Below, one piece after another: positions 1 through 26,800 of a stretch of DNA of 64,000 nt. The notes under the pieces were generated by a model. The model was not told the origin of the DNA and ran no database searches. It worked only from the letters and a program-made list of their open reading frames with translations. How positions within the stretch are numbered: position 1 is the first letter of the stretch; every line of letters starts with the position of its first letter. A program made the position numbers and the translations under genes. This DNA comes from Klebsormidium nitens (Eukaryota > Plantae > Klebsormidiophyceae), in contig DF237344.1 of the NCBI GenBank assembly GCA_000708835.1, forward strand, positions 1-64,000. The letters run 5' to 3'.

Positions 1-2493
1 ACACCACGGCTGAATGCTCAGGTCCTTCTCACATGCTCGGTCGCCATTGTCCTTTACAAGGAAGCTCGTGGAGAACTTGCAACTTGAGAAGCGAGTCACA
101 CTACTCTAGAAGCAAGTAGTTATACTAGCACTACCACTAGGCCGGAGATGGAATTACCCGGTCCCAGATCTACACTCAGCCGGAGGTCCGGCTATCGACC
201 GGGAGTCAACTACTGTCAACCCTAGCATGTGGTCTCTCTCGTGTGACCTAGCCTTGTCACTGGCTATCACTCTACGGTGGGGGATTGCCCTCGTGCGGAC
301 TCGACAGGCCACCGGGGCCTCGGAAACCCCGAAACCTCCGCGTGGATGACACCTGTCAGCCGCCCGCCTTACTCTACCGGACCGCGGCCGCGTGCGCACA
401 ACGTGTTACGGCACCGGCTCCTCACGGCATGGCAACCAGGGAGGTTCTCAAGCTTCTATCTGCTATTTCCTGGTGTTCAAAGCAGACATTCCATTACTAA
501 AAGAAAAGAAAAGCGTTGCCCCTAACGTAAGAACGAGGTTGCGAGCCACAGAAGTAGCCGCCAACAGAGACGGGCCATGTAATGAGTTGGTCAATCAGAT
601 TTCGAAGCCTCAGGGCTGGACAATCAGAAAATCAGCGTTTCAAAGGAGCTGGCATCAATTGTGCACCTCACCAGCCTGAAGTGAGCCAAGTGTATCGTTC
701 CAGCAGCTCTAGGCAAATGTCCTCCATACTCAAAGGCCTTGGGGAAGATGCCTCAGCAGGAGTTGGCGTCCAAAGTGAGCCTGCACAATAGAGCTAGGAA
801 CATCAAACATAGTCAATGTGCCTCGAAAAGTGGAGGGCTGCTATTCTCATAAAGTGGCTCTCATTTGCAAACGTACAGAGTATCAACCAGGAGTCCACAA
901 AACGAAACCACTACGGTGTTGGAGATTCTGGCAGAGGGTCAAGCTTTGTAGAGCGCTTTCAAAAGGATATTTGAATGCCAGAAGCCAATGCTTATTTAAA
1001 AACAAGACAACACAGACAGAGAATCTGTTCAAGCCCTCAGATTTTCTTGCATAGGGCCCCACACGCAGTGAACCAGGGGGCAAACGCAAAGACTACTGAT
1101 CATGATAAGTCCACCCTTTTCATAAACATCAAAATGTTGTCTGCCCTTCTTCTTCTAACATTGGACTCAGGCAGCTCCTTTCGGTGGCACGATAGGATCC
1201 AGTGACCTCCACAGCAACGTTTGTCCCACTTGGAATCTCTTCAGTTGACGAAGCAGCATTGACAATCATATCACTGATGGGGTTTATGGTATCTTGTTTT
1301 GACACCGTCAAAGCTGTAATCCGCATGTCCTCCTGAGCTGCTTGCCCTGCGCAGCTTCACCAACTCATTGAAGTCCCCAGTTTTCACAAGTAGCTGGGAG
1401 CACCTCAAAGACTAAAAACCTTCTTGAAGCAATCTGAGAGCAGAATTTGTGCAATCACCTGATGAAGTGCTGCTCAAGATAAGTGGTAGCCATAGAGCTG
1501 ACTCCTCAACACAGCTTGCAATTCTTCCCCTTTCCCGGCGCTGCACCCGCAGCAGCGCAGGGCGCGAGCCGCCTCAAGTGACATGACACAGATTGTCGCG
1601 AACCTTTTCAACTTCTGCCAATTCCTGTCGTCTTTTTAACGACAAGAAAGGCTTCTGAGAGTCAGACATTGATGTGCGCCTCAGGGGCGCCTCACGAGTC
1701 ATGGTCGCGTTTACTTTAATCGCGACTGTCTGGCCGAGCTGGACCTGGCCCGGGCCGAGCCCTACTAATGACTTGCAAGGCACACGTGGGACCCTCGTGG
1801 TCGACACGTGGCATGATGCCATTTGCTGAAAAGCTTCAAGGTCACGCCTTTATTCAGAAGTCCCATGCCGTCGGGAATTTATTCTCGGCGGACGTTTTAT
1901 TTGGCTGGGGACCGACGGTCGGACGCGCGGCAGGGGGAAAGGATCATTTTTCGCCGGGCAATTTTAGTTTGGGACTTTGCCGTGGACGACTCGGCGGACG
2001 GGGACCTGACCCTAGCTGCTAGCCCGGGCTAGAGTGCGGTCCCATGCCTTTAGGGTTTTGAAGGGCGGATGCTTCCGGGCCTGCCCGGTGATTTGCAATC
2101 TTCGAATGTCGAAAGCAGGACCTAGCAGCCCCAGCATTGTGACCCAAGGAAGGAAACAAGAACCCCCGGTTCTTGCGTGATTGAAACGGGTTGCAGGTAT
2201 CTTGCTGGCAGGTCCAGGCTTCAGCCTCAGGCTGCCACCGTCTTCCAACTTTCAAGAAGACTGACTTCTGCTAGGAAATTGGCGGCAAACAATCAGGTTG
2301 CAAAACATTCAAAGCATTCAGCAAGGAGCATAAGCAAAAGATGGCATTGCTTTCCAAAATCTCTCTACTTGCAGCCCAAGGAAAATAGTCATGGGTTTGC
2401 AGTGAGCATGGAGCATCAGGGCAACACTTAGAAGCTTGTGCTTGGGGGCAGCCTGTGTTCTGCAATTGCTGCGTTTTCAGAGGTCAATTCATC

Positions 2494-5400
2494 ATGCCCA
2501 GGTTCAAGACAGTCCCTGTTCATGTTTCCAGTCCAGTCAGAGTAGCTAGGAAGATGAGCCAAGCTAGTCGGTCCATGCAATCTGCCAGGAAAAGAAAAGG
2601 CTCAGCTTTGGAGGGCAGGGGATCCAAGAGAGCCCGGGCTCTTAGACCTGAGCCTGTTGCAAGTCAGCAGAGGGACACTTTGCAGGAAGAGGTTGTAGAA
2701 GAAGAAGAAGAAGTCACACCCTCTGAGGGCAATTCAGGTTCCAGCTCCAATTCCGAAATGGAGAAGTCTAACTCTGAAGCGGAGAAGACCGAATCTGAGC
2801 AGACCAGCAGTGAGGATAGTGGCGGAGGGGGTCAAAATGGCATTCACCACCAGCAGACAACGGAGTCTTTTGAGCAGGAGGCAGAGTTTGTGCGTGCCGA
2901 TACTTCCGAAGCACACTCTCCTCTTGTCCAAGAGAGTGCTGAAGCGGAAGGACCTCGTAATGCGGCGCCCTCTCCTCGATCGGTGCGGCGCCGACGTGCT
3001 CAGAAGCATGCTCAAGCGGCGGCTGTGAGAAAGGCACCGGCCACAAAGAACAATCAGCGCGGTGCATTGCGAGCATTTCAGGTTTGTATGAAGCTTGAGT
3101 CAGTCCAGTGATTGATGATCTGATGTTGACACAGCCTTGTCATCTGCAGCTTGTTGAGAGCATCAATCTGTTCTGTTGTTTCAGAAGACCAGACTGCCAT
3201 GCCTAAGTCCTGCATCTCAAAGATTGAGTTTCGAGTGCGAAGGTACTAATGCTTGGCAGATGTTTAGAATCTCTCTTCCAATAAAGTTTGACGGATTTAC
3301 AAGGGCAATTGTCAGAGGTTTGTACGTCACAGCCAAAACGTGGGCGCTTCCCTGCACAGTTTGCAACTGATAGGAACAAAGTTGGAAAGATTGGGAAAGA
3401 TTTGAGCTCAGGCAATGTCACTTTTCTTACAGAAGTTCTGGAGAGGTGACCCATATAATCTAGAAGGACAGCAAGAAGTGAATGAGAAGAATGTACGAAC
3501 ATTTTTTGACGAGATCGAAGAAGAGGTGGGTCCCAATTGTCTCAATCAGAATGTAGCTTTGTACAATCTCTGTTGTGGGGGGCACAAGCTCGGACCAATA
3601 TGTGATCCTGTCTTAGAACTTGTTTGTTGTTCCAAGTATCTGCAACCGTTTGCATACTTATGTTTGAGCTGGTAAAGTGATGGTGCTCCAGTGTTGTAGA
3701 ATCCGATCCTGCTCATTCATTCTGACCCTCTATCTCATTCATTTTGACCCTCTTCGCAGCGGAGCCCCACTATCGACAAGTATGTAAAAGGCCTGCAACT
3801 GACCATGCGTCAGATCTGGGCAGCAGCGGGAAAGACAGGCCCTGAGCCCAATATAAGGCGGTACGACGAGGTCAAGCATCGACGGGCTGCGGCAAAAAAG
3901 GCAACCGCTGCACTGAGAAGAAAGTGAGCACAGTCTTTCTGCAAGCAGTTCCGGAAGTCAATCTTTGTTCCTTCAAAGCTTTGCCCATTTGTGTTTATCA
4001 AATTGAGGAGGAACATGCAGGAGGGTTTGTGACATCGTCGTGCTTGCCAGGGGCAACTGATCAGGCTGTCTCATCCTGCGCACCGTGCTTGATAAACAGG
4101 TCTGCTCGATGCTTCTTCCTAAGATCCCCCATGCTTTCAAAGAGGTGTTTTCAAGTATACCGCTAACAACACTGTCCTTTCGCAGGCATGGGTATGACAA
4201 ACAACGTGACAAGCCGGACCGCATCTCGCGTCAAGATATCACCCGCGTCGTCGATCTGATGACAAAGTACCTTTGCCTGACGAAAGAGAAGCTTGCGGAG
4301 CACAAGATGACACGTGGCACGTTGATTAACATGAGGTAGGCTGGCTCCTTCATTTGCATTCTTTACAGGCTAAAAGAGTTATGTTGATTGTCTGCGACCC
4401 GCTCTTGTGTGCTGGTGACGTCATCAAGAACTTCCGGCTTGCGTAACCTGAATTGCTTTCCCGCTTGGAAACACAATTTCTCATCAAGGTTTCAAGCGTC
4501 TTGGATTAAATTGTACAGCTCTGCCCCGTCCAAGCTCACAAAGGTAGTATGGTATCAAATAGTCTGGCAGCATCTTGAAGCTGACGTCAGCAGTCAGCTT
4601 TTGATATCAGCTTGGACTGTTATCTGTAGAGCCACACAACCAGTACTGCTCGCATAGTCACTCAACTGAATTGGCCGCTGTTAAAGATATGATTCGCTGC
4701 GTCGCTGCGTCGGTGGGCATCGGGCCAAGAGCAGATGTCCCCTTCTTCTTTACAGTGCTGTTCTGAATCTTTTGATGTGAAAGGCCTAGAATCGGAAGCA
4801 CAGACCTGCCGAAAAGCTGATAACGTCAGTGCTCAGACACGTCAGCTAGACTTACAGTACCTTCGTGCAGGGCGGACGTGCTTGAGTGGTTCACCACAAT
4901 GACGAGGTTGCAAGACCACCCGTGAGGGCGAGCTTTCTGACCTCAGCATACACCTAGAAGAGGAGATTGGCCCCACCCCCGGGTATACCCTTGACATCAT
5001 CAACGACATCGGGAAGACCAACGAAGTGAGTGGGTTTCGACTCTGCCCGTGGCATAAGCCACAAAGTCATCCAGGCAGCCAGTAAATGCGATTGGAAATT
5101 TCCAGAATAGACAACTCTGCGCGCTCGTGTGTCCCCTTCGTCTCACGTTTCGACTTAGTGATGTAAGTACTGATTATGACTTACCCACCTACAGAACGGC
5201 AATATGGAAGTGACGTCTGTTCTTCAGAACAAGGACGCTGCCATGTGTGCATGGGCTGCCCGCATGCATGCTCTTATCTACAACTGGGCGGTTGCCAAGA
5301 AGAAGAGACCCAAGGCGTGACCCCAAACAGATTGGTGAGATAAGTCCTAAGGTTTTAGGATCTCTTGCCCTTGCCTCGCTCCTGCAGTCCATGTGCCACC

Positions 5401-8400
5401 GTCGACAGGCTCTCATGCTAATTTACTGTGAATGTAGTACTTGCGGTCCTCAGGCTTGGCACCAGATCATTCAGTCTTGCTGTCACGATTCTTCCCACTT
5501 GTAGCTCTAGCTTGGATATGAAAGTCAGTGCTCATGTCATCCTTCTCGGACCCTACATCTCCTGCGTCGTGCGTGCAGGTACACCTGGAAGAAGTCGCCG
5601 GGGCGGAAAGGGGAGGAGGCAGGGTACAGCTACTCGACGCAGCGGAAATACATCCAACACTTCATGAAAGTGCTGGGCATCGAGCATCGACTCGCGGAAA
5701 GCGACGCACGTCGGCCGTCGCCATGGTGCTCGCAAAGCCGCGATCTGGTAAGTTACGACCAGCAACCTCATCAGCTGCGGGACTTCAGTTGTTTCTTAGA
5801 CAGTCTTTGGAAGAGACTGAAAGACTTCAAGCTCACAACACTTGTACTGGTTTCTGCATGTATGAAACGACTTTGTGTCCCCCAATCGACCGTGGCTGGT
5901 TGCGGCCCCGCTTGTCCAAGTTGCTATCGTTTGTGGATTCAAGGCTATGCGCTCGAGCTGGAAACTGTGAAACATGCCTGAAACATGTGGTCAAACATGT
6001 TTGCAGGGCGTCACGCGGCCCGACGTCAAGAAGTACGCTCGATTTACAACAAATCGCAGCGACCACTTTTCGCGGTCGTATGCCCAGGACTCCCCGATGA
6101 CCCTCCAGTTCGGGATGGCCGGGTTTCGTAAAGAGGCGGTTGAGCGCAACTTCACCGATGGGTACCGGCTCGCTAGGTACGCTTGCTGTGCACACAATTC
6201 CGTAGAAGAAAGCAAAGACACTTTTAATGTTGGACGCTGCCCTGGCCGTTTTCGTTCCGTCCGTTTCCTTCCGGTCTCGTTCCGGTTCCGGCCGCGTTCT
6301 CGTTCCGGCTAGTTGTCTCCTGTGCATGGGGTGTGCATGGGGTCCGTTGAGTCAGGCGTATGTGTCTCACCTTTCAAGGTTGACAATCCGCTTCCACGGT
6401 GTGTTCCCTAACGCTCAATTCATTGGTGCAGGCTGATTCCGACAATTCCTCAGGAGCTGTTGAAGAAGTTCTGTCCATGGGTCGAGAAGGAGTATCGAGA
6501 GATCAAGCAGGTGAGCGACCATCCGACGCTTGACAGTTGCCCTCCTTTGATGTATTCGCAGAGAAGGCCGACCGATCTGGTGGCTCTAAATCTTCTCAAC
6601 GTTTTCTCAACTCTTGAAAGGGAGGCCGACCCAACGGCTTGCTCGCCGAAGCGTTTGAGTGTGCTTGCGACGATGCTGAAATCAGGCGAGTACTTCAACG
6701 TTCATCTTTCTGAGTCGTTCTGATTCTGAGCTTCTACCTGCGCCCACTTTCTTTCTCCACATCAACCTGGTGCGTGATACGTCCGTGGTTTATTTGCAGC
6801 GGAATGCAAGTGCGACCCTGGACGGAGATAAACGGGTGACGTCGGAGAACTTCTTCCAGTTCTTGGCGTGCGGAAAAGAAGTCTTCCTCTCAAGTCTTGC
6901 CGCAATGGAGCCGGTGTACCCGAACCTGTGCTTGTTCGAAGACATGAGCTTGTTTGAGAACCGTGCCTGGGTGGAGTACAAGCGAGCGGTCCAAGAAGCT
7001 GATGCGAGTCCTGATCGTTGCCTTCCCCCACGGCAGGATAATCAGGTAGGCAACCGACTTCATTTGCAACTTCAAGGAAAAAGGATTCTGAGAGCCTTCA
7101 CAAAGTCCGAGCTTTTCCAACGTTCTTGTGAGTTCTAAGCAACATTTTTCAGTGCTTTGCGTTTGAGCCTGTCACAACATCTACTCGAAAACCGCCATGC
7201 AGCTTGAATCGCTTCAGAATTCGATGCACTAGACAACGAGACACCCGTTTGGAACGTTTTTCCGGCTGTTTGCAGGGTTGTCAATGGACCATTCATTTTT
7301 CCCTGCCGCTCGTTTTCCATTTTTACATTCTGCTTGAGCGCTGACCACTCGTTCTTAACTTAGTCCTGGCTCCATTCTTGCAGTCTCTGCTTATGACGGA
7401 GCTCCGGAAACACTCCGACCAGCTCGGGGAGCTCTTCCGGGTGTTCCGGGACTTTGCTGCTCGTCGGGAAGGCGCCGGCGTTTCTGACGGCTCGCCCCCT
7501 TCGCCGCACGGACCACCTCCGCCACCGCGGCCAGTCCAAAGGGCGAGAGGCAGCGCGGCAGACGAGCGGCAGCCCGAAACAGGACGTGGGTCCCCGGGCT
7601 GCTTCACATCTCCCCGGGCAGACCCGCCGTGTTCCCCGACAGTCCCGCGTCGCCCCGTCGACAACCGGTGGGCACCCCCGGACTTCAGACCTGAGCTGAG
7701 CGGAGCTCGGTTTGAGCACCGGCGCAACCAGGCGCAGTTTGCGAGCGCGGGTTGGTATCAACCGGGGACAGGTTCGGAGGTTTGACGCGGGTGATGAGCC
7801 GGCCGGGGGACGAGCAACCGGGGGGTTTTCGAGCGGCAGAGAGACCCGGGGAGGGGACGTCAGGGAAGGAACCGGACTTGGGGAGCGGAGAGAAGGGACC
7901 CGGGGGGCGTGGAGAGAACCGGCTAGTCGAGCGCATGGGGACGAAGCACCGGGCGGAGCGGCGGGAATGCGTGCTCATCCGGGGCGGGGTACAGAAACCG
8001 CAAATGGGGCTCAAGGTGCCGAAGAAGTGGGGCTACGTGCTCGGGGAGGAGGCCCAGCCGAAAGCGACGGCGGAAGCGAGGAGGTCTATGAAGAAGGTGA
8101 ACCGGTCCCTGGTCAGCCGTACGTCTATCCGTGGCCGGCATGCAGCACTGTAGTTGATGTGTATCGGGAAATGCACTCCGGTTTTGCCGCGCACATGCCG
8201 GCTCTCGTAGAGTTGGAACGTGCGCATGGCTCTGCGTGGCGACGGGGAAAAGGTCACCGGCAAAGGTTTAACGAGAAGGTACAAATCTGTAAATATGTGG
8301 AGCACATTCAAAGGGAGCACGGTTTTGAGAATGGAGTGACTGCGGTGGACTACCTGTCCGGGAGGTATAAAAGCTTGAAGTCCCTCTTGAAGGATCTGAG

Positions 8401-8449
8401 GGCATTGAAGAAAGCCGGACAAGCAGCGGCTGCTGCACCAGCACCCTAG
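2494..8449 (+). mobile_element. Crypton (CryptonF-like) tyrosine-recombinase transposon gene with C-terminal GCR1_C domain; disabled
   Basis: Exons 2494-3081, 3433-3525, 3760-3923, 4186-4335, 4871-5025, 5195-5334, 5579-5747, 6007-6176, 6432-6510, 6800-7045, 7384-8449, all GT-AG. Motifs appear in Crypton/Ndc10 order: ADVLEWFTTMTR..TREGELSDL, GKTNE|NGNMEVTSVLQNKDAAMC, DW|Y, SYSTQ, KATHVGR (HxxR), SRSYAQDSPM..MAGF (catalytic Y at 6079), PQELLKKFCPW, FFQFL..EVFL..YPNLCLF. These are followed by GCR1_C-like STVVDVYREM..LVELERAHGSAWRRG. Lesions: +1 at about 4917, TGA at 5318, +7/-1 in exon 7, frame change(s) in exon 11. Family assigned from recalled motifs; element ends not found. Confidence 0.85.
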
Positions 8450-9308
8450 TCACGTAGAACATACAGAGTCGTCTCGCCAACAATAAACGTAGTACCATGT
8501 AATGTAGTACCACTTTTGTGCTTCTATCATTGATGCTCAGTGCTTGATCCGCATGCTCGTTTAAAAGTTGCAATCAACCTCTCACAACACGAGGCCGTTT
8601 GACAACCTGTCGCAGTTGCGTTATGATTCAATGCAGATGCCCATGGTCTATGTATGCGGCATACAACCAAATATTGAATTCAGCTTTTAGTGCGGTACAC
8701 AATCAACTCTTAAACTCGCCAGCGATTGAAGCGATAACATAGTCAACCTACCAGGTCATTCTGTGCCAATTCTTCAATTGTGCAACGGTTTGGTACCTTA
8801 AACGGCCGTTTGCAAGTTCGATCGGATTGTTGCTTGCCAGAATTTTGAATGCCAGTATTGCCTCAGCCATGGCAACATGCACACATGATGCATAGTGCAA
8901 CTGCTTGAGAATGAATCATACTCAGTGAGCTATGCCACGTAAATTTCTGCGCCGTGCTTCTAGTACGTCTGTTGGATCCTAGCTGATCGCGTCAGGATGA
9001 ATGTAATTCCAGATTCTCTTTTCTCGGCGATTCCTCGGATCATCCCTCTAGCTTCCTTTGAGCCTGTCTTTGTGTATACTTCTGCTGCTGCCGACGTCAC
9101 CGTGACTGGCACACTGATTCATAAGGCCGCGCCGCGCACAACTGCCGCGACCGCCGCAAGCTTATACGTGCGCGCACAGAGCGCGACTGACAGTACGTAA
9201 AGGTACCGTACCGTACTTAGCTTGGTACCTACCTAGGAATTGAAAAAAGCTAGAGCCTAGCTGTACAAGTACTGGTACCGGTAGGTACCTAGGCAGAGGT
9301 ACCTACTA

Positions 9309-9598
9309 CCGTAGTCCAAGGTAATGATTCCGAATAAATAAATAATTATTTGCATTCGGAAAGTCAGAAATTCAGGTTTCCCGTTCGGAAAGTGGAAATT
9401 AGCAAAGATTAAATAATTCTGAAATAGGCTTCGAAAGGCCAAAAATTGCTCAAATCAGCCCTAAAATGCGTCTTCAAGTGTGAACATAGGGCATTCGGAT
9501 TCTGGTCGGAATCCGCATAAGTAATTCCGCATTCCTGGTCGGATTGTTGGAAAATATTACTTGGAAAATCCGTTCGGAATGATCACGTTGGACTACGG
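9309..9598. mobile_element. 290-bp non-autonomous DNA transposon (MITE), Tc1/mariner-like
   Basis: 26-bp terminal inverted repeats 9309-9334 and 9573-9598 match at 23/26 (CCGTAGTCCAA...TTGGACTACGG). TA on both sides (9307-9308, 9599-9600). AT-rich non-coding interior. Confidence 0.75.
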
Positions 9599-10004
9599 TA
9601 CCTACTTCCTATATCGCTCTCCGCCTCATGAGTTGGCGGTATCCCACGAGTACGTACGGTGTACTCTGTACAAGTACGTACCTAATTCGGTAGGCCAATT
9701 TTGAGTTTCGATTCAGGGGGGTCTGCGCAGTAATTGTTTTTATACTGGGGGTAGTAAGGTCCCCATATAGGATCGACGTTGACCCCGTCCGCCCCCGTCC
9801 GACTCCCCGTCGAGCGGGGAGGTTGGACGTACTACCCCCCGGGCCGGCGAAGTTATGATCCTGCTTCGGTACCTGCATGCACATGAAACTTTCCGAAGGA
9901 CGTCCACATTGAATCTGATCCTGAAATCCAGAAGGTCAGTCCTAAGTGGGCCCGGAGCGCACCACCTACTCGAGACATGTAGCCTCAGCGTTTGTGTGTC
10001 TCTT

Positions 10005-13000
10005 ATGGCGCCCTCCTTTTTCTCCCCTTTCCTCGACCGCCTCTCCCTCCCGCAGCCGGCCCTGCAGCGCGCCGCCGTCCGCAGCATTTTCGCACATTTC
10101 AAAAGAGCGCCCTCCCACGAACAGCCCAGCTCAGCATTGGGTGAGGAGACACTAACCGTCTGCCTAACCCACCGGAGCCCAGCTGTGGTGGACGAGACAG
10201 CCCAGCAGTTAGTGCGCCTGGTTAGCGAGCGCCCGGATCTGGTGGGCAGTGCAAAGGGGGTGGATTTGCTTCTTGCGGGTTTGAGGGAGGTTCCGGCTGG
10301 TGGGGTGGGGCCAATCGTGGGCGCCATTGGGGCAATTCTGCGCCTGTCGTTGGCAGAAAGTTGGGGAAATGCTAGACCCCCGACGTTGGAGGAAACAGCA
10401 GCACAAAACGAGGAAGATCAGCTCAATTTTGCCACTGGCATATCCTTCTTTGACAGACAGCCTAAAAGCTCCGATGGAGTGGTGGTAGCGAGAGCAAATG
10501 CCTCAGAGTCATTTGCAAGCCCAAGCGCGCAAGCCTCCGGGGAACAGCACCCCTTTTACCGGGCGACCCTCCTCAGGGACGAGTGTCAAGAGCCGGTGCT
10601 GCGGCAAGTGGCGATCCTCTTAACACAAGCAGGAACCTCCGGGCACGAGATCGAGGCGCTTCTGCATCTGCGTTCGTTCATCACTTCCGTTCTGCTGCAT
10701 GGGGCTGGGGGGGAGTTCTTCCGTCGGCGCCTCACGAGCGCTTTGGTTGGGATTGCAGCCTCGAGCGGCCCAGGATTGGCGGGGCCGATACTGGAACTGC
10801 TGATATGGCATGCGGGGCTGATGAGAATAGGCACTTATGGGGTGCAAATGGGCTCCGGGGATAACCGAACAGGTCTGCAGGAATCTGTGGCAATCTCAGC
10901 CGCCTTTGCTGAAGATCTGGCTGACCTGATCCAACATCTCAAGGAGAAAGCCGGACAACAAGCTGGAGCGAATCCTTTCTCAAATCAACGATTTCTCCAT
11001 GGCATCAAGGCAAACGCATTCCGCTTGCTTGGGGCGCTTCTCAACGCCGCGTTCGAAGCGCAGGGCGCCGACCTCTCCTCTCTGCCCTTCCTTAACACCA
11101 TCGCTCGCTTAGTGGTTCTCTTGCCCCCAGTGGTGTCAATCCAGCTCCTCCCAGTGTGGGGCTGGCTCCTCTCCAGAGCCCAAATTGAGCAGGAGCAGCT
11201 CTCAATCCTGCGCCTTCTAAGTAGAGCTCTTGAATCAAGTGCCGGTCACAAACCCAGTAGCCCTCCAGATGGAAAAGCCACCGAAACAGAACCGCTTGTA
11301 GCAACTTCAGTTCTGCCCATCCTCCAATTGCTTGCTCTTCCCTCCGGCCTCATCAGAAACCACGCCGTCACAGCCCTGGACAAAGTTGAGGAGATCATGG
11401 CAAGCCCAAAGGCAGAGCGCCAAGTGGCAGCAGGAGGCACCACGGGCGAGAGTCCAGTCAAGGGGGATCCCTTGACAGAACTCTGGTTGATCAGCGGCGA
11501 AGCCAAGCTCGTCTCGTGCCTCAAGACCCTCGTCGCTAGCCTTTGGACCGGAGCCCACGTCCCAGGATTCTCGGGGGAACTTAAAAGCTTCCCATCCTCG
11601 GCAGCCGCCGCCAGTCCAACCCCAGATTCTTTAGACGGCACCGTCTCCTGGCTGGCCGCTCTGGGCGCCCACCTGGAAACCCTCCCGCCGCAAAAGCAGG
11701 GCTCGAAATCGCTGCAGGAAGGCGAGAGGACGCCGTTGGGCGACCTTGTGCGGATAGCGTTTTACGTGGGGGGAGCGCTTATGATGCATCCGGAGGCTTA
11801 TGTGCGGGCGGAAAGTGCAAAGGTGTTGGGGGCCGCTGCCAGGGTGGACCCGGTGCAGGCGGTGCCATTACTGCCAGCTGTCCTGTGGTGGCTGCGTAGA
11901 GAAGAGACCGTGGTAAGAAACCTCAATTTACATCGTCTCTCCTTTGACCTGATTCGGTTTGACAAGTCAGTAAAGACTTGGATCCTGTATATGGAGGGTT
12001 GCCGGAGACACAATGCGCCAAGAGTAGGAGCCCTTGGCACATGACGTCTGCTGTCCTCAGTCGATCGGTTTCTTTCGTGTTTGGTCTTAACATAACTTGT
12101 TTCCAGCTCTTGAGAGGTCCGGCTCTCGAATCTCTCGAGATATGTTTGTGGACGCCTTTCTCTTGATGTCCATGTTGAAAGGACATGTTCGGCCCAAATA
12201 TATTCACGTTCACCAGAGTTTAGGCAAAGTTTAGACTGACAATCGTGGACGGCATGTCGCTCAGACGAACAAAGCTCCTTCTGACGGATAAGCCGCATTG
12301 TGACCAACGGCAATCTTTACTGCTACTCCTGCCGAAATTGGCATAAGATTGCCCTATGAATTGCACAACCCATATCGTCTTCTTCTTTTAGCCTTGTCAT
12401 GCTCCGTTCCAACCATCGCGCAGGAGAATCTCCTTGACCGTCGTCGACTAAACATTAATTTTCTACTCACCTGGCCTTCACTCATGCACTGCCCAATATG
12501 GCAATTGTGAAATCCGGCTGGTTTCTCATACAGGCCCAGCAAGCCGCCTCCCCCGCTGTGCAAGGCAAGCCTAGAGCTTCCCACTCCGTCCAGCTGTCCC
12601 TGCTCTCCATCCTCCCCTCTTTAGGCGCCCACCTGGCCACCGTGGGCCCGGTTCTAAAGTCCCTCCAACCGATGCTCGAGCCCACCGCCGAGCTTCCCCT
12701 GAGAGCCGTCGGATTGCGCCTGCTGAGCCAACTGTGGGCGAATCTGGACCGTTCGTTCCCGCGCCTCCAGGCTGTTCTGATGGCCGGCGTTTCGCTGCCC
12801 AAACCCTCGCAAACCCTCCCCAAACCAGGGTCAGAAAGAGAAGGGATCTACGTGGCGAATCGCCCAAGTGGGCAGTTGAGAAAAGGGAGAGACTCAGCGG
12901 ATTTGGAATGGAACATGGCGCGAGCGGCTTCGATTCGGGGGGTCTGTGGCAAGGATGCGGCGAGGGGGGTGGAACTAGTGCTTGGGATCCAGGCGGCAAT

Positions 13001-16000
13001 CCAGGACCCTAACCCGGTGGTTAGCGCCCTCGGTTTAGAGAGCCTGGAGGTCTTGTGCGAGGATGACGCCATCGGTGAGCCTGCTTGTCATCTTTCATTA
13101 CAATTGAATGAACGATATGACGTAACCTCGGGAGTAAAACTTCCTGCTCTGTTTTGCAAAACGCGAATGACGAGTTCTTGACGTCATAAGCAGGCGCTGC
13201 GCGGTTTTGGGTGATGCTTGAAGCCTGAGAGCGTGGAGTGTTTTATAACGCTCTTGAAGCTCCAATGGGTGGTTTTTGTTCACCTTTTCCGTCTTTCTTT
13301 ACTCTCCCTCGCCGCTCTTGCTCGCCGGTCTGCTACAATTCTTGCGGCGCATGGAAAGAAGACGTCTGGCGACTCCTTCTTGACTCGTCACAGATCTTTG
13401 GTTTGGACTCTTGAGCTTCCATCGAATTAAAGTCTTAACACCTGATCGAGGATAAGCACCACTTCTTGGTTCTCGATCTTACTCGAGATTGATTGGATTC
13501 GCCTCCTTCGCGAGCAAGGAGAAATTCCGTAGGCCCTCTGCTTTCTGGTCCAATCAACGATTGCGACGTGTCGCCCGCAGACTTCTACACGGCCTGGCGC
13601 GTGGTCCGGCGGACGTTCCCAACCCTCCCGGACGACCCCCGCGTGGCCGCCAGATGGGCTTCCCTGCTCGCGCACGGGGCGCTCGACGCGCGCGCGGAAC
13701 CAGACTTGGCGGCGGAGGTGCTGTCGTTGCTCTTGGAAGCTGCGAAGGTGCGTCAGTATCTTCTGTTTCCTTACACGTCTCCTCCTTTCTCTTCCTATTT
13801 CTCTTTCTATCTCCTTTTTCCTGGCTTTCTTTTTGTCTTTTCTTATCTGCTTTGTTCTTGCTTGCACCTGCTCCTTGTTCTCTCTTCATGTCGCGTTCTT
13901 TTTCCTTCTCCTTTACTGTTGCTCGATTTCTTCGACTCTTGTGTAACCCTTCCTTTCAAGCCTGAGCAGTGGTGGGAGCGACATCATTAACGGGCAGAAG
14001 AGGTGCTTAACTTGCTGTCGGAAGCCGCGAAGGCTCGTAAAACTTGGCTGATGTCCCCGCCCCTGACGTGACAAGTCTCTGACGAAAGAGCACGGAGTCT
14101 TGAAAAAGGAAAGTGCTTTGGAGAGGAGCGCGTTTGCCGTCTTCATTATTAACCCAAGATACGATACTTGGCAATTTGGATCTCGAGGGACCTCTATGCT
14201 ACAACCGGTGGACTTAAGATAAGTGTCACTAAGCGGTCAAGGCGGGTGTCTAAGAAAAGAGAGGCTTTCGGTGTGAGAAGGGCAGTTCTCTCTTACCGGA
14301 TCTTGCCGAAAGATTTCTTCTGAGGAGGTTTCGAGTGTTGTGGACCTTCCAAAGCGATAGGGAGTGCAGTGGTTTCTCTTTCCCTTGGGAGTTTGTTGCC
14401 ACGGTCAGGCCCTCATTCTTTTACACCTTCAGCCAAGCACTGCGAAGCGCACAAACTCAAAAGGATAGCGCATGCGCCAACCGAAAAGGCTGGGGAGTCG
14501 GTTACGCCAGCGTGACAGGATTGACCTGAGGTGACAGCAGCGTTGAGGGAATTTCCCAGGATATCAATGAGGTAAAAGCAGTGCGATCAAAGTGGCGCGA
14601 TCAGAGTTCAGGGTGTGACCACTGTTCGGTCCATACGGACCCTTCAGCGGACCGCAAAATCTCGCGATAGCCGGAATCGCAGCGCTACCGTCCAATGTGA
14701 ATAAAGGGACTCCAGTCTGCAAAGGTCAGCCAGTGTCTCGCAAACTTTGACAGGACAGGTTCCGATACCAGGGTTCAGACAAACCGTGTTTAATCAAGCA
14801 CAAACAGAAGATCTGGACCGTTCCATTTTTCGACTTCAAAATCTGGACGGCAGCTCTGCGATTATTGGTCGGCCCCCAGCCATTTCGCACTTCTGCGTTC
14901 CGCCCGCCTCGTGCTTATCGAAGTGCATTTTTCATTGCAGGCGGGAGGACCGTCGGAAAAGGGCGACCGGTGGTGGCGAGTGCGGAGCGCCGCGGTCGCC
15001 TCACTGTCCGCGTACGCCTTCGAAGCCGTCCAAGAAGTAAGCCTCTGTCCGGCGAACTCGATTTACTTACCCGTACTGCGGATTGGCACCCCAAGTCCGC
15101 GACTCTATTTTCAGACTTTTGCATTTTCGCACCAAGAAGAGACATTCTTGTTTTCGTTTTTGCCCAACTTGCCTTGCTAATAGGCTGTATTTTGGTCTGA
15201 AACTTCCTTGATTAGTCATCTCAACTTTTCGCGTCAGGAGCAAATATTTTCCGGAGATGACTAGGGATGAAATCATTATTTCTATGCGGCTCATGGTAAT
15301 ACGGGTATGGTTTTTGCTTCTCTGTTCAGCACTCGCTTTCTTCTTCGCTTCCCGCTCCAATGGTCGGTCTCTTGAGGCCAAGTCGAGGGCGTAGAATACT
15401 TGCTCTGCGCCGGTTGGCGTTTAGAATGTCGCGTTGCTGATTGTCATACTGCAATCGAGTGTCTTTTTTCCCTTTTTAAACCATCAACAGTATCAACTGC
15501 TCCTGTTTCAAAAACCTCGGCGCCTCAGCCATCAATAGTGTGCTGAGTCGTGGGAATGATTCTTCAGACCCATTGTTGATAACTATCTGCTTTCATTGGC
15601 GGATGTTTGGGTGATTGAATCCAGACACGTTTCAAGAACATTGCTGCAGAAAGTCTCTCGCCCGGCGAACGGCCGCAATCCCGAGAGTGCTGGATGGCAA
15701 AATCTTTGTTCTAACTTTCTAGCCGTTCCCGTCAGAGAGCCTTGAAAAAAGCTCAGATGGATGTTCGATCTCCTATTCAAGTCCGGAGATTGCCCCTGCC
15801 GGACACGCCTCTTTTTGTGCTTGCAGGTGTCACCTCGTCCCCTGTCCGACTACGTCAGCCTGCTGCTGACGGAAACGCACAGTGACGTCAGGGCCGCGTG
15901 CGAGGGCCTGGTCGTGAAAGCGTTGCAATTTGAGCACAGGTGCGCCAACCTTTTTTATTGTTTTCCCGGTCATCTGAGCTTCATGCTGCTGTCGTCATTT

Positions 16001-19000: not shown

Positions 19001-21983
19001 TCTGGTTCTGTTTTTCCCTGTTTCCGTCGTCTGCTGAGCTTACCTCTCTATCATTTTGTCGCTCTGCAATGTGCCTCGCGACTGCAGCTACTTATTTTGT
19101 CGTCGAAGCTTTCATTTGTGATTGGTCCGTTAGGTGCAAAGATGATAATCGCACTAAGTATTTACGCGTCTTCACAGAACCCGTGGAAGGAGAACGGGGA
19201 TTCGAATCGAACTTCCGGACCCCCCTTCAGTCTTGGACCCCCTGCGCGCGCGAAACTTGACGTCATTGAGTCCGGCCGCAGTTCCGTAGCTTCCGCTACA
19301 TGCTAGCGTACCCCGTAGGTTGAAGACCACGATACGACTATTACGAGCCCGGAGTCCGGCCGAATTTCGATCAGCGGAGTCAAAGGCGTTACTACCCGCG
19401 CGCGTAGGGGGTCCTAAATCGAAAGGGGTCCGAGTAGCTCGATTCGAGTCCACGTTCTCCTTCCACGGGTTCTCACAAGATGAAAGCCGGAATCTGAAGG
19501 TTTCTTCGCGGATGCAGGACCCAAAAGTTCAGAGGCAGGCTGCTTGGGCCCTGGCCGCTTTGTACGACTCTCGTTTCGGCGGAGGGGTTTCGAGTCGGGG
19601 GGCTGCTCCTGGAGCGGAAAACGCCCCCCTGCGCCGAGCCTTGCCGGGACTTCCCGAAGAGGGCGCCATGCGGCCGCTGCTGACGTACCTGCTGACGTTT
19701 GCGGAGGGGCCCGGTTCGGACGGCGGCGCAGTGGGGCAGTCGGCGTCCGAACCAACCCAAACGGCGGAGCATAGGATATCGTCCGAAAGGCATAGCTTAT
19801 CGACGGGGTCGGACGGTGTGACGTCAGCTACGGCAGCGGCCGTTTTGCGGTGCTTGGCGAAGGCGCCCCGGCTGCCGGCGCTCAACTGGGGCGTCCTGTT
19901 TAGGCGGCTCTTCCGGGCAGAGCACCAGGGCGGAACGCCTAGAGAATCTCGGGCGGCGGAAAACCCAGACGGAACCACTAGAGGTCTTCGAAGGGCGGAC
20001 AATCAGAGAGAAACGCCTAGAGATTCACAGGCTGCGGCGGTGCGACGAGAGTGCCTCCGGGTGGCAATTGCGCACGGTCGGGAGGTGCCCACGTTGGCCG
20101 TCTTTCTGGACAACACGTGTCAGCTAGCGAGGCTCGTGACGTTGGAGACGGACCTACAGATCCTGATTGCTGAAACTCCCGCGGCGCTTTTGCGAGCCCT
20201 CCCGCGGTCAGCGGGTTTGCGGGTTTTGGGCGACCTGCAAGACTTGGCGCTGGGGTACGGGTTCGCCGAAGAAGGGAGCGGATTGCGGGCTGCGCTCTGG
20301 CGAGGTTTGGGGGAGGCTTTGGAGGGGGATGGCGCTTCGGTGAGCGAAGATGGGGAGGGAAACGAGGTGCGGGCAGCGGTTCTAGAAGCGGTCAGAAGTG
20401 TGTACCGAACGCTTCCGGTGGACGTGGGAAGCTTTAGAGGCGCCCGCACGTTGGAGAAGCCCGGTGGGAACTCTAGAGGAGCCGGCGAGAATCGGAGAGG
20501 AAGCAACCCTTGGGGGGCTGCGATTGAGTCCCTCGCAAAGACTGACAGGGCCTGGCTGCTGGAACTCCTAAAGCTTCCCAGCTCCAGTCAGCAGCAGTAC
20601 ATCTCCGGAGAAGCTTTAGAGGTGCCCGCAGAGGAGTTAGTGTCCCAATTCAGAGCCGTGATCGCCCGGATACTCCTAGCGAACAGTTCGCACCTCCCGC
20701 TGGCAGACCTGAAACCTTGTCGAAAGTGGCTCTTGGAGCAACTAGACTGGGGACAAAAACCGTCGCAACCCTCTCTCTCGGGGAGCCACGCACGCTCTCT
20801 CGCCAGCCAAGAAAACCCCGGGGCTTCAAACAGGGGGGAAACGAGTATACCCGGTTCAGGGGGGTCGTTGAACGCGCTGAGAGAGGGGGGGTACGGAGTA
20901 GCCGATCTAGAGGGGGGGGTGGAAGAGCTGGTTGCTGTAGTGGCGGCAACGGGGGGTGCGCAGAAGTGGGAGTGGTTCACGGAGACGCTGGACTGGACCC
21001 TGCTGACGTGGCGGCCCCTGCAGGTACGCGTCGCGCTGAAAGACTTAGGCTGCTTGTTAGCATGGGCTGAAATTTTGGTTTGCTTACTCGCTTCCGCATC
21101 CTCAGAGGAGGATGACATGCTGGTCAGTCGGACTAAGCCTTGCGATACATCACCCTGCTCTTTCATTGCAAAAAGACTTTTTTCCTTTTGAATTTCTCCG
21201 CTTGCCTCATCTTATCACTTCGCAAAAGGAGGTCGAGGTGCTAATTCTAAGAGACAGCGACGTACTCTTAGATAACAAGAAGTTGCTGAATATACGTCGA
21301 TATAGACCGGTATATAGTTGGCTCTTACGGCAAGGCAACGGTGCCTGACCCGCGTTATCCAATATCGTTAAGCGCACGCCAGGGCAGCTCGGCTGGGTAA
21401 CTTCGAAGAAGAAACGCTGGCTTGTGTTACTGGAGATAACGCATTGAGTTGAGCTCTTGCCTGCGTCTGTTCCTATTGTGAAGAGGCCTCCAGTATCCAA
21501 GAAGGCATGGCACTGGTTTATGAGATTAACAATCTTTCTCAAGATCTTTCCTGAAAAGACTGTTTTGACAAGTGCTATCGCCTTAAGAACGGTATAATCT
21601 CAAAAAGAACTCGAAAAGAGCTTTCTTTTCTTGTAACCATCCTCAACCTACTGACGCAGCTTCGTCCTCTTCTCCAGGGCCTCACTTTCCTGGCACTCCT
21701 CTGCAACGCGTGGCTCCCTTCGACGTCGCCGTTCCTTCCAAGCGCGCCCGTCGAGACGCTGGCAAACCTCCCGTACACTCTACCGGCCGTACTGGCCGAT
21801 CCGGACTTTGAATCAGACCTGCCAGCTGTCATCCAGAGATTGGTCAGCATTCTGACCAAGGGGGATGCGCACGTGCGGCGCATCCTGTTGCCGTGCCTCG
21901 TCGGCTGCCGGGAGAAGCTGTCGATTGACACGTGGCAGTTTGTGGCGGACCTAGCCGTGGCGCAGAGCGTGACGAGGAACTGA
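10005..21983 (+). CDS. RST1: RST1 (RESURRECTION1)/focadhesin family protein, about 2089 aa, 9 exons
   Basis: Exons 10005-11912, 12534-13074, 13581-13747, 14941-15036, 15827-15939, 16579-16828, 17471-18853, 19518-21023, 21678-21983; phases sum to 6270 nt. The N-terminus (FLDRLSLPQPALQRAAVRSIF..CLTHRSPAVVDETAQQLVRLV), DFYTAW and the C-terminal LANLPYTLPAVL resemble plant RST1 as recalled. Confidence 0.9.
19169..19480. repeat. Foldback (84-bp inverted arms) in RST1 intron 7
   Basis: Arms 19169-19252 and 19397-19480 match at 67/84 ungapped by my count, including a 21-bp perfect core AGAACCCGTGGAAGGAGAACG. No clear target-site duplication. Confidence 0.8.
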
Positions 21984-23855: not shown

Positions 23856-26800
23856 ATGGGGACGCCTTCTAGTGGTGAGGCCGATGGCCCAATGCATGGG
23901 GCACCCAATTGCAGTGCAGGTAAGCCACTCTACATCAACGTATCGGCTCCAAATGGCCTTGGACGTATTGGCCTTGAATTGGCTTTTTGGACGGGTTAAG
24001 CACGAGCCCTAGCTTCTGGTCTTAGGCTTCACTAGGCATGTTTTCGAATCCCTGCCATGTCAAGAATTGGATTCAGACTCCAAATAATCCATTGCTTTTC
24101 TGTGTTGCAGATTGCAATGGGGCAGTCGAAGGTAAGCTGCTCTTCCTGTCGTTGGTGCGGTCAAGACATGCTTTAAAGGCATGCCAATCGGATTGAGAAT
24201 TGATCTTCAGGGGTTTCAGAGTCAAGAGGCGCAATTGCATGACAACAACTTTCAATGTCAAAGAGTTTGTCCCCGACATGAAGTTGGCAATTGCGCTTAA
24301 TCATGAAGTAATCAGGATGACTCGAACCTCTTGAGGCACAACAGAGTAATCCCTTTGCTTCTAGACCCTATGCATTTGGCATCTGTCTTTCTGTATCACT
24401 TCGTCTATCATACTCAAACAAGATACTTAGATCTTCTGCCGGAACGCGAGGAAACTTACAAGTCACCTAGTCCGGCGTCAGATATTGTCGTCCTTAGGAT
24501 TAACTGAAAGATTCTGCGGCTGTGTTAGCGTTTAAAATTTCTTGACATATCGCAAAATCGCTCTTATCTTGTACATCAATCAGCTGTGTCCTGTTCAGGC
24601 GGCTATACGACGGGGTTGAACATAGTCCCGACCGAAAAGCTAGAAGCTGTCTCAAACACAAAGTATGACTACATCGTAGTCGGAGGAGGTGCGGGGGGCA
24701 TCCCCCTCGCGGCCGCCTTGGCCGAAGACAAGAGCCTTAGAATCTTACTGCTGGAAAGAGGGGCGTCACGGGACGAACATCCGGAAACGCGGGTGAGTAA
24801 CTGTACTTTGAAAACCCATTTCATACTTTTTCAGGTGCGTTGTAGCATGCACACGGCTATCGTCAGCAGGTGCTTTGAATTTCCCAAACGTTTGTAAGGC
24901 TTTGGTCAGCGATCCTGGGCTGTTGAATCAGAAGCAAAGCTTTTACGGATTTAGTATGAGTCTGAGTTCAGGAGCACAACCAAACCCGTTCTAATGTGGT
25001 GATCCTTTTCGTGCAGATGCAAAGCAAATGGGTCGACCTGGCCAAGACCGGCGCTGTCGAGTTGCTGCGCACTGAGAGCGGCGTATGGTCTGCCCGGGGC
25101 AATGTAAGGGTCCTAAGATCCTTAATAACGGTTAACGAGGTTGTTAATTAAACGAGATCAGCTTCACGAAGCTTTCGGAGATGAGCTTCCTCTCGAGCTG
25201 GTTCTCGAACTTCTTCTCCCAAGCTTCTTGAGCCCTTCGGATTCTCTGGATCTCCGAAGCTGGTTTGCCCAGGTGATTGTCAGTAGATCGTTCGTCCCTC
25301 TTATTGTTGTGAACTTCTGGATTTTAGTACTGCTTTTGAAGAGAAACGGTTTCTGTATCCCCAAGTGTAACCATATCAATCTGAGATAGAAGACATTGAA
25401 GTATCGCGAACAGTGTGCCCGGGATGACCGTACGAGAGCCGGGCTCTGCCAAGAAACTCAAGAATCACTTAAAGTGTCCCAGATCAGAAATCGCTTAGAC
25501 TCAATCGTAAAACAGCCCACACCCATTCTCAAGTAGCCCGAACTCTCCTTTAACCAGGTTTTGGGCGGCGGAACCGCGGTCAACATTGGATTTTGGGGCC
25601 ACGCCAGCCCGGACAACATCAAAGCGGAGGGCTGGGACGCTGAGGCTATGCAAAGCGCGTATGCGTATCTGGGCGCCCGGTTGTCTTTCCCGGGCACTGT
25701 GGGACCGGTGCAGGAGCTGATCCAGGAGGCGTGGCAGGAAGTAGGAGTCGGGTCATTCAACGGAGTGACCCCGGAGCATGTCGTGAGTTTCATCCCGTTC
25801 TTTTCTTTCCTTGCTTTCATTGACCGGTCTGAAGTTGTAATCAAATCTACCTCTCTATGTCTGCATTGGCCTTGCAAGTTTACAAGTTACACTAGGGAGC
25901 AGCTATGAAGGCCGTTTTGGCGGCGGAAAGTGATGATTTGTTCGGCCCTCGTCTGCCATTTATAAGGGATTGCGTGAGCAAGACAGGCTCCATTCACACC
26001 GTCGCCGAGAGTACACTCACTTTGCGCAATCGATATCATATGGAGAATCGAGAAGCATTCCAAAAAGAAACGGGATCCACGGTTCGTGCTTGCAGCCCGG
26101 CGTGAAGACGGTCATGCTGACGTTCAATTCGGACGGCGTCCGACACGCTGCGGACGAGCTGCTGGTGGGGGTCAAGAACGTCGACATCGTCACTCGAGCG
26201 CTGGTGTCCGGAGTCTGCTTCTCCGATGACGATGGTAAGCCGTTCACTTAGGCCGCAGACGAAGTGCAGAACCACCGAATGGCATGGGGCCGACTCGCAG
26301 CGTTTTGCCGTTCAGGAAAAACGCTTCAGATGTCTTGTTTGTGATAAGTGTGTTGTGGGCTGCCAAGAACCAGGTATGGGACCCCGTCCTGACAGGATTC
26401 AACTTCCAGGCTGTATCCTTCGATCTGGAGTTCTTTTGTTCAAATGTTACGGTAGCACTGCCATTACGAAGATCTCGACGTTCCGCGATATATGTGCCTT
26501 TGAGCCGTCGCTCAAGCTCCGTCATGAGGATTGACATTGAGCGGAAAGTGTGAGAGCTCACCGGTGGTCCTCTGAACCAATGAGATGGCTTCAGCCGATC
26601 ACGTGGGCTTTAGGATTACGGTTGGATCGATTGCACAGACTTCTCTACTAACCTTTTGCATGCGTTTGCAGTACTGAAAGAGTTCCGACTGCTGTTTTGC
26701 AGGCGACCTGACGGCGATCGGGGTCGAATTCGAGGGCGCGGACGGCGTGCCCCGTCACGCTCACGTCATTCCCGCGGGGGGTGAGGTCATCCTGTGCGCG

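Follow-up and report, generated by a model that had tools for sequence, protein, structure and literature searches.

A probable CryptonF-like DNA transposon, decayed though still transcribed, in the streptophyte alga Klebsormidium nitens

Introduction

Cryptons are rare and poorly understood elements, and the source of Ndc10, Gcr1 and the animal DUF3504 genes. The CryptonF elements of fungi and oomycetes include Crypton-Cn1 (Goodwin, 2003). CryptonF is defined by a tyrosine recombinase (YR) joined to a GCR1_C domain (Kojima and Jurka, 2011, PMC3212892). One element of this architecture, CryptonF-1_cRei of Chlamydomonas reinhardtii, was found to surpass all other transposons of one strain in activity (Lopez-Cortegano et al., 2023, PMC9977147).

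A locus near the start of contig DF237344.1 of Klebsormidium nitens raises the question of what a gene of this kind may be in a streptophyte alga: a transposon, living or dead, a host gene derived from one, or a recent arrival from a fungus or oomycete. Here we analyse the stretch of 64,000 nucleotides that contains it (positions 1 to 64,000, hereafter the window), in which the gene had been predicted from the letters alone. The window probably contains one decayed copy of an intron-rich CryptonF-like DNA transposon of the Crypton class. The copy is a relic, non-functional though transcribed, and neither an active element nor a domesticated gene.

Results and discussion

A transcribed gene of eleven exons

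The original prediction had assembled eleven spliced exons, and RNA-like contigs from four runs in four studies bear this out. They hold one spliced transcript of ~3.37 kb with exactly eleven exons, running from an ATG at 2494 to a stop at 8449 and without any difference from the genome (Table 1). The ten introns, all GT..AG, are removed correctly, and the splice sites, earlier judged intact, are all in use. A candidate for an extra exon at ~3186–3246 was rejected, as the RNA does not use that stretch. Sixteen RNA-like runs from six studies hold 43–56% of the words of 2494–8449, in keeping with an exonic share of ~51%. The promoter of this copy is still working.

Table 1. Features of the element and its gene, in window coordinates; L006, L001 and L002 are related copies.
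Feature	Position	Strand	Basis
Proposed whole element, ~8.0 kb: left block, gene, ~1.3 kb spacer, right block	1874..9861	+	Similarity edges vs L006, L001, L002
Left conserved non-coding block (segB), upstream of transcript start	1874..2114	+	78% identical to L006 4349–4580
9-mer CCCCGTCCG in left block, inverted	1995..2003	-	One of only three exact copies in 64 kb
Transcript, ~3.37 kb spliced	2254..8561	+	Ends projected from RNA contig records
Exon 1: conserved start codon, acidic/Ser-rich N-terminus, basic patch	2494..3081	+	RNA; L006 5025–5558, 45% aa identity
Exon 2	3433..3525	+	RNA; 77% aa identity to L006
Exon 3	3760..3923	+	RNA; 83% aa identity to L006
Exon 4	4186..4335	+	RNA; 71% aa identity to L006
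Exon 5: box I Arg (AGG) 4905–4907, Lys of GKTN 5014–5016; +1 base	4871..5025	+	RNA; nucleotide alignment with L006
Exon 6: TGA in frame at 5318–5320	5195..5334	+	RNA; L006/L001 comparison
Exon 7: H-V-G-R 5707–5718, out of frame	5579..5747	+	RNA; L006/L001 comparison
Exon 8: Phe 6043–6045, catalytic Tyr 6079–6081	6007..6176	+	RNA; L006 comparison
Exon 9	6432..6510	+	RNA; relatives
Exon 10: C-terminal end of NDC10_II-like region	6800..7045	+	RNA; PF16787 match of L006 counterpart
Exon 11: coiled N-part, low-complexity linker, GCR1_C (~8138–8329)	7384..8449	+	RNA; Pfam
Small MITE-like insertion in 3' spacer	9307..9600	.	28-nt inverted arms, 89% complementary
Right conserved non-coding block (segA), ~1.1 kb past transcript end	9712..9861	+	83% identical to L001, L002, L006
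Two tandem copies of CCCCGTCCG	9783..9801	+	Exact 9-mer search
Imperfect palindrome, candidate recombination site: 13-nt arm, TCGAG spacer, 14-nt arm	9797..9828	.	DNA fold z = -2.3

A recombinase of the CryptonF kind

Of the catalytic set R, K, HxxR and Y, all the predicted codons lie where they had been placed, though not in one open frame of the mRNA. A Phe stands at the position usually held by Trp or His before the Tyr, again as predicted, and does so likewise in L006 and L001, hence in three copies. Since the motifs are kept in both of these relatives, their presence in the window is not due to chance. In L006 the same eleven exons form an uninterrupted coding sequence of 2913 nt (~970 aa) with R, K, HxxR and Y in order and GCR1_C in frame with the recombinase. 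The GCR1_C domain itself, expected downstream of the recombinase, was recovered from the last exon of the window copy (PF12550, E 8.9e-9, 36 bits vs a cutoff of 23) and from L006 (E 1.8e-9). A YR with a C-terminal GCR1_C fits the definition of CryptonF (PMC3212892), in agreement with the original assignment.

The recombinase domain was assessed exon by exon, and on this basis appears homologous to CryptonF/NDC10_II. Our reference was P0021 with its upstream ORF, a CryptonF-type metagenome protein with NDC10_II (E 2e-38) and GCR1_C. Among 1629 ORFs, a profile of exon 7 places the upstream ORF of P0021 at the top (E 5.7e-5), and Smith-Waterman scores against shuffled sequences gave z values of 9.1 for exon 7, 3.7 for exon 5 (R..GKTN) and 2.6 for exon 6, the matches following the order of the reference; the spacing from the Tyr to an AGF motif is also the same in window exon 8 and P0021. 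Exons 7 and 10 of L006 match Pfam NDC10_II (PF16787) in order and where expected along the profile (E 0.13 and 0.014), and the NDC10_II exon scores sum to ~26.7 bits vs a cutoff of 26.3, with no single exon above the cutoff. The profile search proposed as a check upheld GCR1_C above its cutoff, while NDC10_II fell below its own on exons taken singly. The L006 counterpart of exon 10 matches positions 279–316 of the 317 in PF16787, the region that is also matched by the N-termini of the CryptonF fragments P0014 and P0011.

Apart from exon 7, the recombinase exons are only weakly similar to known CryptonF. Profiles of the other exons found nothing significant among CryptonF-type ORFs, BLASTP did not match exon 10 to P0011, and a look-alike search of the ESM Atlas with exon 10 was uninformative. 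When the window exons were scanned one at a time against Pfam, with E values up to 10 allowed, GCR1_C alone was returned. No Pfam domain besides GCR1_C was found in the pieces scanned, and neither reverse transcriptase nor LTR-like repeats are present, as distinct from DIRS, Ngaro and VIPER elements.

Five lesions in the window copy

Comparison of exon lengths and nucleotides with the intact relative L006 mapped five frame or stop lesions, two in exons 5–6 and three in exons 7, 8 and 11. One extra base near 4906–4909 lengthens exon 5 to 155 nt vs 154 nt in L006, and the frame from ATG 2494 ends in this exon at TGA 4923–4925. The TGA of exon 6 sits in a patch that is 3 nt longer, where L006 and L001 have Leu-Glu. 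A net gain of 7 nt at ~5672–5685 (169 nt vs 162 nt in L006 and L001) places the H-V-G-R of exon 7 out of frame; L006 and L001 read this exon in a single frame. Two additional nucleotides within the first 18 nt of exon 8 (170 nt vs 168 nt in L006) then restore the frame. The last lesion is a frameshift at ~7775–7815 in exon 11, such that frame 1 ends at TGA 7783–7785 and GCR1_C lies in frame 2; the whole exon is in one frame in L006, L001 and L002. With the ATG frame stopped in exon 5, a TGA in exon 6, HxxR out of frame and GCR1_C uncoupled, the locus is a transcribed relic, and its mRNA cannot make the recombinase.

Might the gene still function by frameshifting, read-through or separate products, namely an N-terminal ~350 aa, a middle 359 aa and the GCR1_C ORFs? 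The +7 and +2 shifts do cancel, leaving a 359-codon frame open from exon 6 to 7782, and the mRNA is present in many libraries. However, a continuous product would call for two frameshifts with a read-through between them, the HxxR box would still be replaced by unrelated residues, and the relatives read all the broken exons in single frames. We give this idea almost no credence, the least of any that we weighed.

A mobile unit or a host gene

The four diverged copies (the window copy, L006, L001 and L002, the relatives coming from other assemblies) lie in unrelated flanks. Similarity among them begins sharply at GGAAT (1874) and stops at GATCC (9861), possibly at 9869, and the termini are fixed only to within ~10 nt. 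Beyond these edges the flanks have nothing in common, at the protein level included (tblastx, all flanks), and synteny between copies was rejected on the same comparison. About 6.3 kb of the ~8 kb unit is a single recombinase gene. Cryptons are expected to end in direct repeats of 4–6 bp that correspond to the target site; the only direct repeat at the ends of the window unit is a 4-nt TCGG match (1871–1874 / 9866–9869), such as chance could give, and long direct repeats are absent from the 64-kb window. The 3' spacer spans 1.3 kb in the window copy vs ~0.9 kb in L006.

The unrelated flanks, together with shared end blocks that carry an inverted 9-mer (see below), point to a mobile unit of ~8 kb (1874–9861) rather than a host gene, so far as sequence comparison can tell. 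The alternative is a Crypton-derived host gene, a domesticated recombinase or DNA-binding protein that recently became a pseudogene in this strain, with segB and segA as regulatory sequence. Its transcript occurs in the 16 RNA-like runs of six studies, its intron positions are conserved under strong, long-term purifying selection, and no assembly seems to have more than a single copy at 90% identity or above. Near-identical copies were likewise absent from the sequences searched, P0017 occurring on one contig and P0001 on two. Against domestication, the intact relative keeps all catalytic residues, whereas known domesticated derivatives have lost theirs (PMC3212892), and no two copies have flanking genes in common. 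Three of the four copies are broken, L006 being the intact one; their lesion sites differ from copy to copy, indicating that they died independently, and the window ORF alone is broken five times. A conserved block 1.1 kb past the poly(A) end that has an inverted 9-mer in common with the upstream block, and a stray reversed fragment of segB in L002 (truncated, 77% identical to the window block), also argue against a host gene, which we consider unlikely.

The same contrast holds for the yeast proteins derived from CryptonF, Ndc10/Cbf2, Gcr1, Msn1 and Hot1. They resemble the window family in having NDC10_II-like and GCR1_C domains, but they are intact and conserved in position and have lost the catalytic site, whereas the window family keeps the catalytic residues and is non-syntenic, and the copy here is broken.

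Conserved end blocks as candidate cis sites

The end blocks are 78–94% identical among copies despite saturated synonymous sites. segA, 94% identical between L001 and L002, is conserved beyond the level of the exons. Exact CCCCGTCCG is restricted to the end blocks, inverted between them, in the window and all relatives, and occupies the same place in segB of L006. The palindrome of segA is nested in an outer inverted repeat (9747–9756 / 9830–9839), a stem in which both sides have changed in L001 and L002 while the pairing has been kept. Neither block gave a match in Rfam and tRNA scans, so that neither is a known RNA gene. segB and reverse segA do not align significantly (z 1.4), and a long terminal inverted repeat was rejected on this ground.

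We infer that the end blocks are likely cis sites. In the intact relatives, a single 11-exon gene encodes a protein of ~970 aa with a low-complexity N-terminus, a tyrosine recombinase of the NDC10_II/Crypton kind (R...K...HxxR...F...Y) and a C-terminal DNA-binding GCR1_C. If the published Crypton model applies by analogy, this recombinase would excise the element as a circle that then integrates site-specifically, with segB and segA and their inverted CCCCGTCCG as putative recombination sites. segA recalls the FRT site of the FLP system, by analogy only, in that direct motif copies and an inverted copy across a 5-nt spacer resemble the three FRT symmetry elements. It differs in its imperfect arms, and the two protein families are distant.

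An inverted end motif is atypical for Cryptons, which have been described as lacking inverted terminal repeats (PMC13465315). We tentatively suggest, as a possibility well short of even, a CryptonF-like lineage of streptophyte algae distinguished by long, highly conserved end blocks (inverted CCCCGTCCG and an FRT-like palindrome as recombination sites) and by Phe in place of Trp/His near the catalytic Tyr, with one member, of the L006 type, intact and possibly active.

Age, origin and known relatives

Synonymous sites are saturated between the copies. As dN/dS is at most 0.13 and replacements are not in excess along the branch to the window copy, inactivation is recent relative to the divergence of the family, which supports the earlier suggestion of fairly recent inactivation.

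Searched exhaustively against proteins, the GCR1_C part had only 11 matches, no full-length relative among them, and a word search with the last-exon ORF gave three; scans of metagenome contigs by protein alignment and by the segA pattern were both blank. The closest GCR1_C relatives are algal-type contigs at 50–78% identity, while fungal matches reach 27–37%. This bears on a second suggestion of the original prediction, recent horizontal acquisition from a fungus or oomycete, the classical hosts of CryptonF, in which the group was first described and between which transfer has been proposed (PMC3212892). Ten spliceosomal introns, at positions common to diverged algal copies with saturated synonymous sites, speak against such a transfer, as do the algal-type relatives, a base composition that matches the surroundings and the fact that CryptonF is already known in a chlorophyte (PMC9977147). 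We regard this origin as very improbable.

The CryptonF-like element of the window shares with fungal and oomycete CryptonF the order of YR and GCR1_C, an alignable order of R, K, HxxR and Y (compared with the CryptonF-type metagenome protein of P0021 and L007) and the lack of a reverse transcriptase. Unlike these elements, the window gene has ten introns, its family carries Phe for Trp/His before the catalytic Tyr, the ends are blocks of 150–240 bp with an inverted 9-mer rather than terminal direct repeats of 4–6 bp, and sequence identity outside box II is low.

CryptonF-1_cRei is likewise a green-algal DNA transposon with an intron-containing YR + GCR1_C gene. It inserts preferentially in gene-proximal and 5' regions (PMC9977147), and the window element adjoins an RST1/focadhesin-like host gene, lying directly upstream of it. 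Its host, however, belongs to another algal lineage, and the window copy is dead. Compared by description, CryptonF-1_cRei has CACCG at its end and CAYCG as its target, neither of which was identified in the window.

Implications

The idea of an outlier for the green lineage finds no support, CryptonF having already been published as active in Chlamydomonas (PMC9977147). With an active representative of the type in another green alga, the present element is a modest addition and no surprise. Our literature search turned up no publication that deals with Cryptons of streptophyte algae, and this may be the first curated description of a Crypton for them. The family consists of four members, one intact and the rest dead, with an 11-exon gene model verified by RNA and a set of candidate cis sites. 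A curated family from streptophyte algae would show that CryptonF with introns has long been resident in the green lineage, beyond fungi and oomycetes. The end blocks are concrete sequence on which recombination and the binding of GCR1_C could be assayed, and if the lineage suggested above is real, the cis sites of a Crypton and the DNA target of GCR1_C would become directly testable.

Transcript structure and family assignment

The stretch between 2494 and 8449 has a eukaryotic split-gene pattern, and the eleven exons of the original prediction are borne out by RNA-like Logan contigs from 4 runs of 4 studies, which, aligned to 2470-8469, give a single spliced transcript of ~3.37 kb. Genome and spliced contigs show zero differences, and all ten joints are GT..AG, so that the splice sites, read as intact, are indeed those used in RNA. 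In 16 RNA-like runs from 6 studies, 43-56% of the words of the gene stretch were present, in agreement with its exonic share of ~51%.

Exons of the window copy and conserved non-coding blocks accompanying it
Feature	Position	Location	Evidence
Exon 1	2494-3081		spliced RNA-like contigs
Exon 2	3433-3525		spliced RNA-like contigs
Exon 3	3760-3923		spliced RNA-like contigs
Exon 4	4186-4335		spliced RNA-like contigs
Exon 5	4871-5025		spliced RNA-like contigs
Exon 6	5195-5334		spliced RNA-like contigs
Exon 7	5579-5747		spliced RNA-like contigs
Exon 8	6007-6176		spliced RNA-like contigs
Exon 9	6432-6510		spliced RNA-like contigs
Exon 10	6800-7045		spliced RNA-like contigs
Exon 11	7384-8449		spliced RNA-like contigs
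segB	1874-2114	non-coding, upstream of transcript start	similarity to other copies
segA	about 9712-9861	non-coding, 1.1 kb past transcript end	similarity to other copies

CryptonF elements are defined by a tyrosine recombinase (YR) plus a GCR1_C domain (PMC3212892). The window gene has the latter, in its last exon (Pfam, E 8.9e-9, 36 bits, cutoff 23). The codons of the proposed catalytic set are likewise at their positions (R 4905, K of GKTN 5014, HVGR 5707-5718, F 6043, Y 6079), the HVGR box of exon 7 lying, however, off the frame that joins exons 6 and 8. The Phe at the W/H position, noted earlier as replacing the usual Trp before the Tyr, is common to the window and two related loci, L006 and L001.

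Recombinase similarity was assessed one exon at a time in all searches. In the profile search proposed with the original prediction, GCR1_C exceeded its cutoff. On L006, Pfam NDC10_II matched with profile positions 141-181 in exon 7 (E 0.13) and 279-316 in exon 10 (E 0.014); the two matches are in correct order and sum to ~26.7 bits (cutoff 26.3). As a CryptonF-type reference from metagenomes we took P0021 (NDC10_II E 2e-38, plus GCR1_C) with its upstream ORF L007:996-1517, which spans NDC10_II positions 2-94. The exon 7 profile ranks this ORF first of 1629 (E 5.7e-5). In local alignments with the reference, judged against shuffles, z was 9.1 for exon 7 (HxxR), 3.7 for exon 5 (from the Arg of box I to GKTN) and 2.6 for exon 6, the matches following the order of the reference; exons 2-4, 8 and 9 yielded no significant match. 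The spacing from the catalytic Tyr to AGF appears equal in the window-family protein and P0021.

Homologous loci and lesions of the window copy

With the GCR1_C part as query, an exhaustive search of proteins returned 11 only, and a word search one further protein; the contigs of these proteins led to three homologous loci. All eleven exons are present in L006 (Logan, SRR23617307), with intron positions as in the window, GT-AG introns throughout and an uninterrupted CDS of 2913 nt (970 aa). L001 covers exons 6-11 and is interrupted by stops in the linker and exon 8; L002 covers exons 10-11, with two stops within GCR1_C. Together with the lesions of the window copy, this leaves one intact copy and three broken at differing places. 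Two stretches are 100% identical in the otherwise diverged metagenome contigs (L001:1-123 and L002:1-123; L001:4634-4689 and L002:4853-4908), probably through misassembly or a repeat common to both.

The window copy is broken. Reading frames were followed separately in each exon, and lesions were placed by comparison with the relatives. The frame from the ATG at 2494 ends at TGA 4923 in exon 5, which has 155 nt rather than 154, with one base added near 4906-4909. A patch of exon 6 that exceeds its counterpart in the relatives by 3 nt brings in an in-frame TGA (5318) where they have Leu-Glu. Exon 7 (169 nt vs 162; net +7 near 5672-5685) and exon 8 (170 nt vs 168; +2 within the first 18 nt) carry shifts that cancel, yet the HxxR box becomes unrelated residues. 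In exon 11 the frame ends at 7783 and GCR1_C lies in the next frame, with an additional shift at ~7775-7815 in the low-complexity linker.

Candidate ends and genomic setting

Two non-coding blocks, segB on the left and segA on the right, accompany the gene across copies, with 78-94% identity between copies whose introns are unalignable and whose synonymous sites are saturated. Similarity is lost sharply at 1874 and 9861, and no flanks are shared between any two copies, protein level included. Across the 64 kb there are just three exact copies of the 9-mer CCCCGTCCG, one on the minus strand in segB and a plus-strand tandem pair in segA, and in the ten loci retrieved for comparison it is confined to homologous places. 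segA also contains an imperfect palindrome with a 5-nt spacer, inside an outer inverted repeat in which two-sided changes in L001 and L002 preserve the pairing. We suggest that segB and segA are the ends of the element and likely recombinase sites. Long TIRs were not supported. Published Cryptons are described as having 4-6-bp direct repeats only (PMC13465315); the sole candidate here is a 4-nt TCGG match, which is no proof.

A stray segB piece, reversed and truncated, lies 0.9 kb past segA of the L002 copy (L002:4716-4833), and is either a solo end or what is left of another element. A shorter form of the motif, [GT]CGGACG, clusters on both strands at 19716-19815 and 26129-26156; over the whole window it is about twice as frequent as expected (29 found, 14.8 expected). 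The 3' spacer contains a MITE-like insert of 294 bp (9307-9600), later than the element insertion; its inverted arms of 28 nt are 89% complementary and separated by 238 nt.

The neighbouring gene downstream is RST1/focadhesin-like (DUF3730, E 1e-26) and is not found in the 8.6 kb downstream of L001. This large host gene occupies 9855-13181 and beyond; since its first long ORF begins at 9855, in the last bases of the right block, the element lies in the gene's 5' region. CryptonF-1_cRei (YR plus GCR1_C), the most active transposon in one Chlamydomonas strain, has insertions enriched near genes and in 5' UTRs (PMC9977147). Elsewhere in the window, minus-strand exon-bearing ORFs at 33427-34119 and 38298-39185 code for a CFA20 domain that is divergent (its best matches in databases reach only ~50% identity) and for an FKBP_C domain, and there is a minus-strand match to the plant C/D-box snoRNA snoZ122 (Rfam; 41547-41642, 40.4 bits, gathering score 38). 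Both this plant-type snoRNA and the RST1-like neighbour are consistent with a green-lineage genome.

A different gene, with the GCR1_C domain only, is present at L003:10001-10917, L004:10001-10917 and L005:10001-10489. Its domain, split over two exons, is ~50% identical to that of the window, and in these three contigs from different samples it adjoins an opposite-strand gene for a gamma-tubulin complex protein. A search within 10 kb of it gave no recombinase exon, and it may have arisen as a host gene from a Crypton.

Origin, selection and inactivation

An unreported streptophyte lineage or a horizontal acquisition had been envisaged. Our literature search found no paper tying Cryptons to Klebsormidium or other streptophyte algae. 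Horizontal transfer is unsupported: the ten introns are shared, composition matches the host and the nearest GCR1_C relatives are on algal-type contigs. An alignment of 423 codons from the window copy, L006 and L001 gave pS of 0.69-0.80 and dN of 0.22-0.25, hence dN/dS is at most about 0.13. Lineage-specific replacements numbered 38, 41 and 32, and the window branch thus has no excess, which agrees with the fairly recent inactivation proposed. These estimates indicate that purifying selection acted on the family and that the window copy died late, on its own branch.
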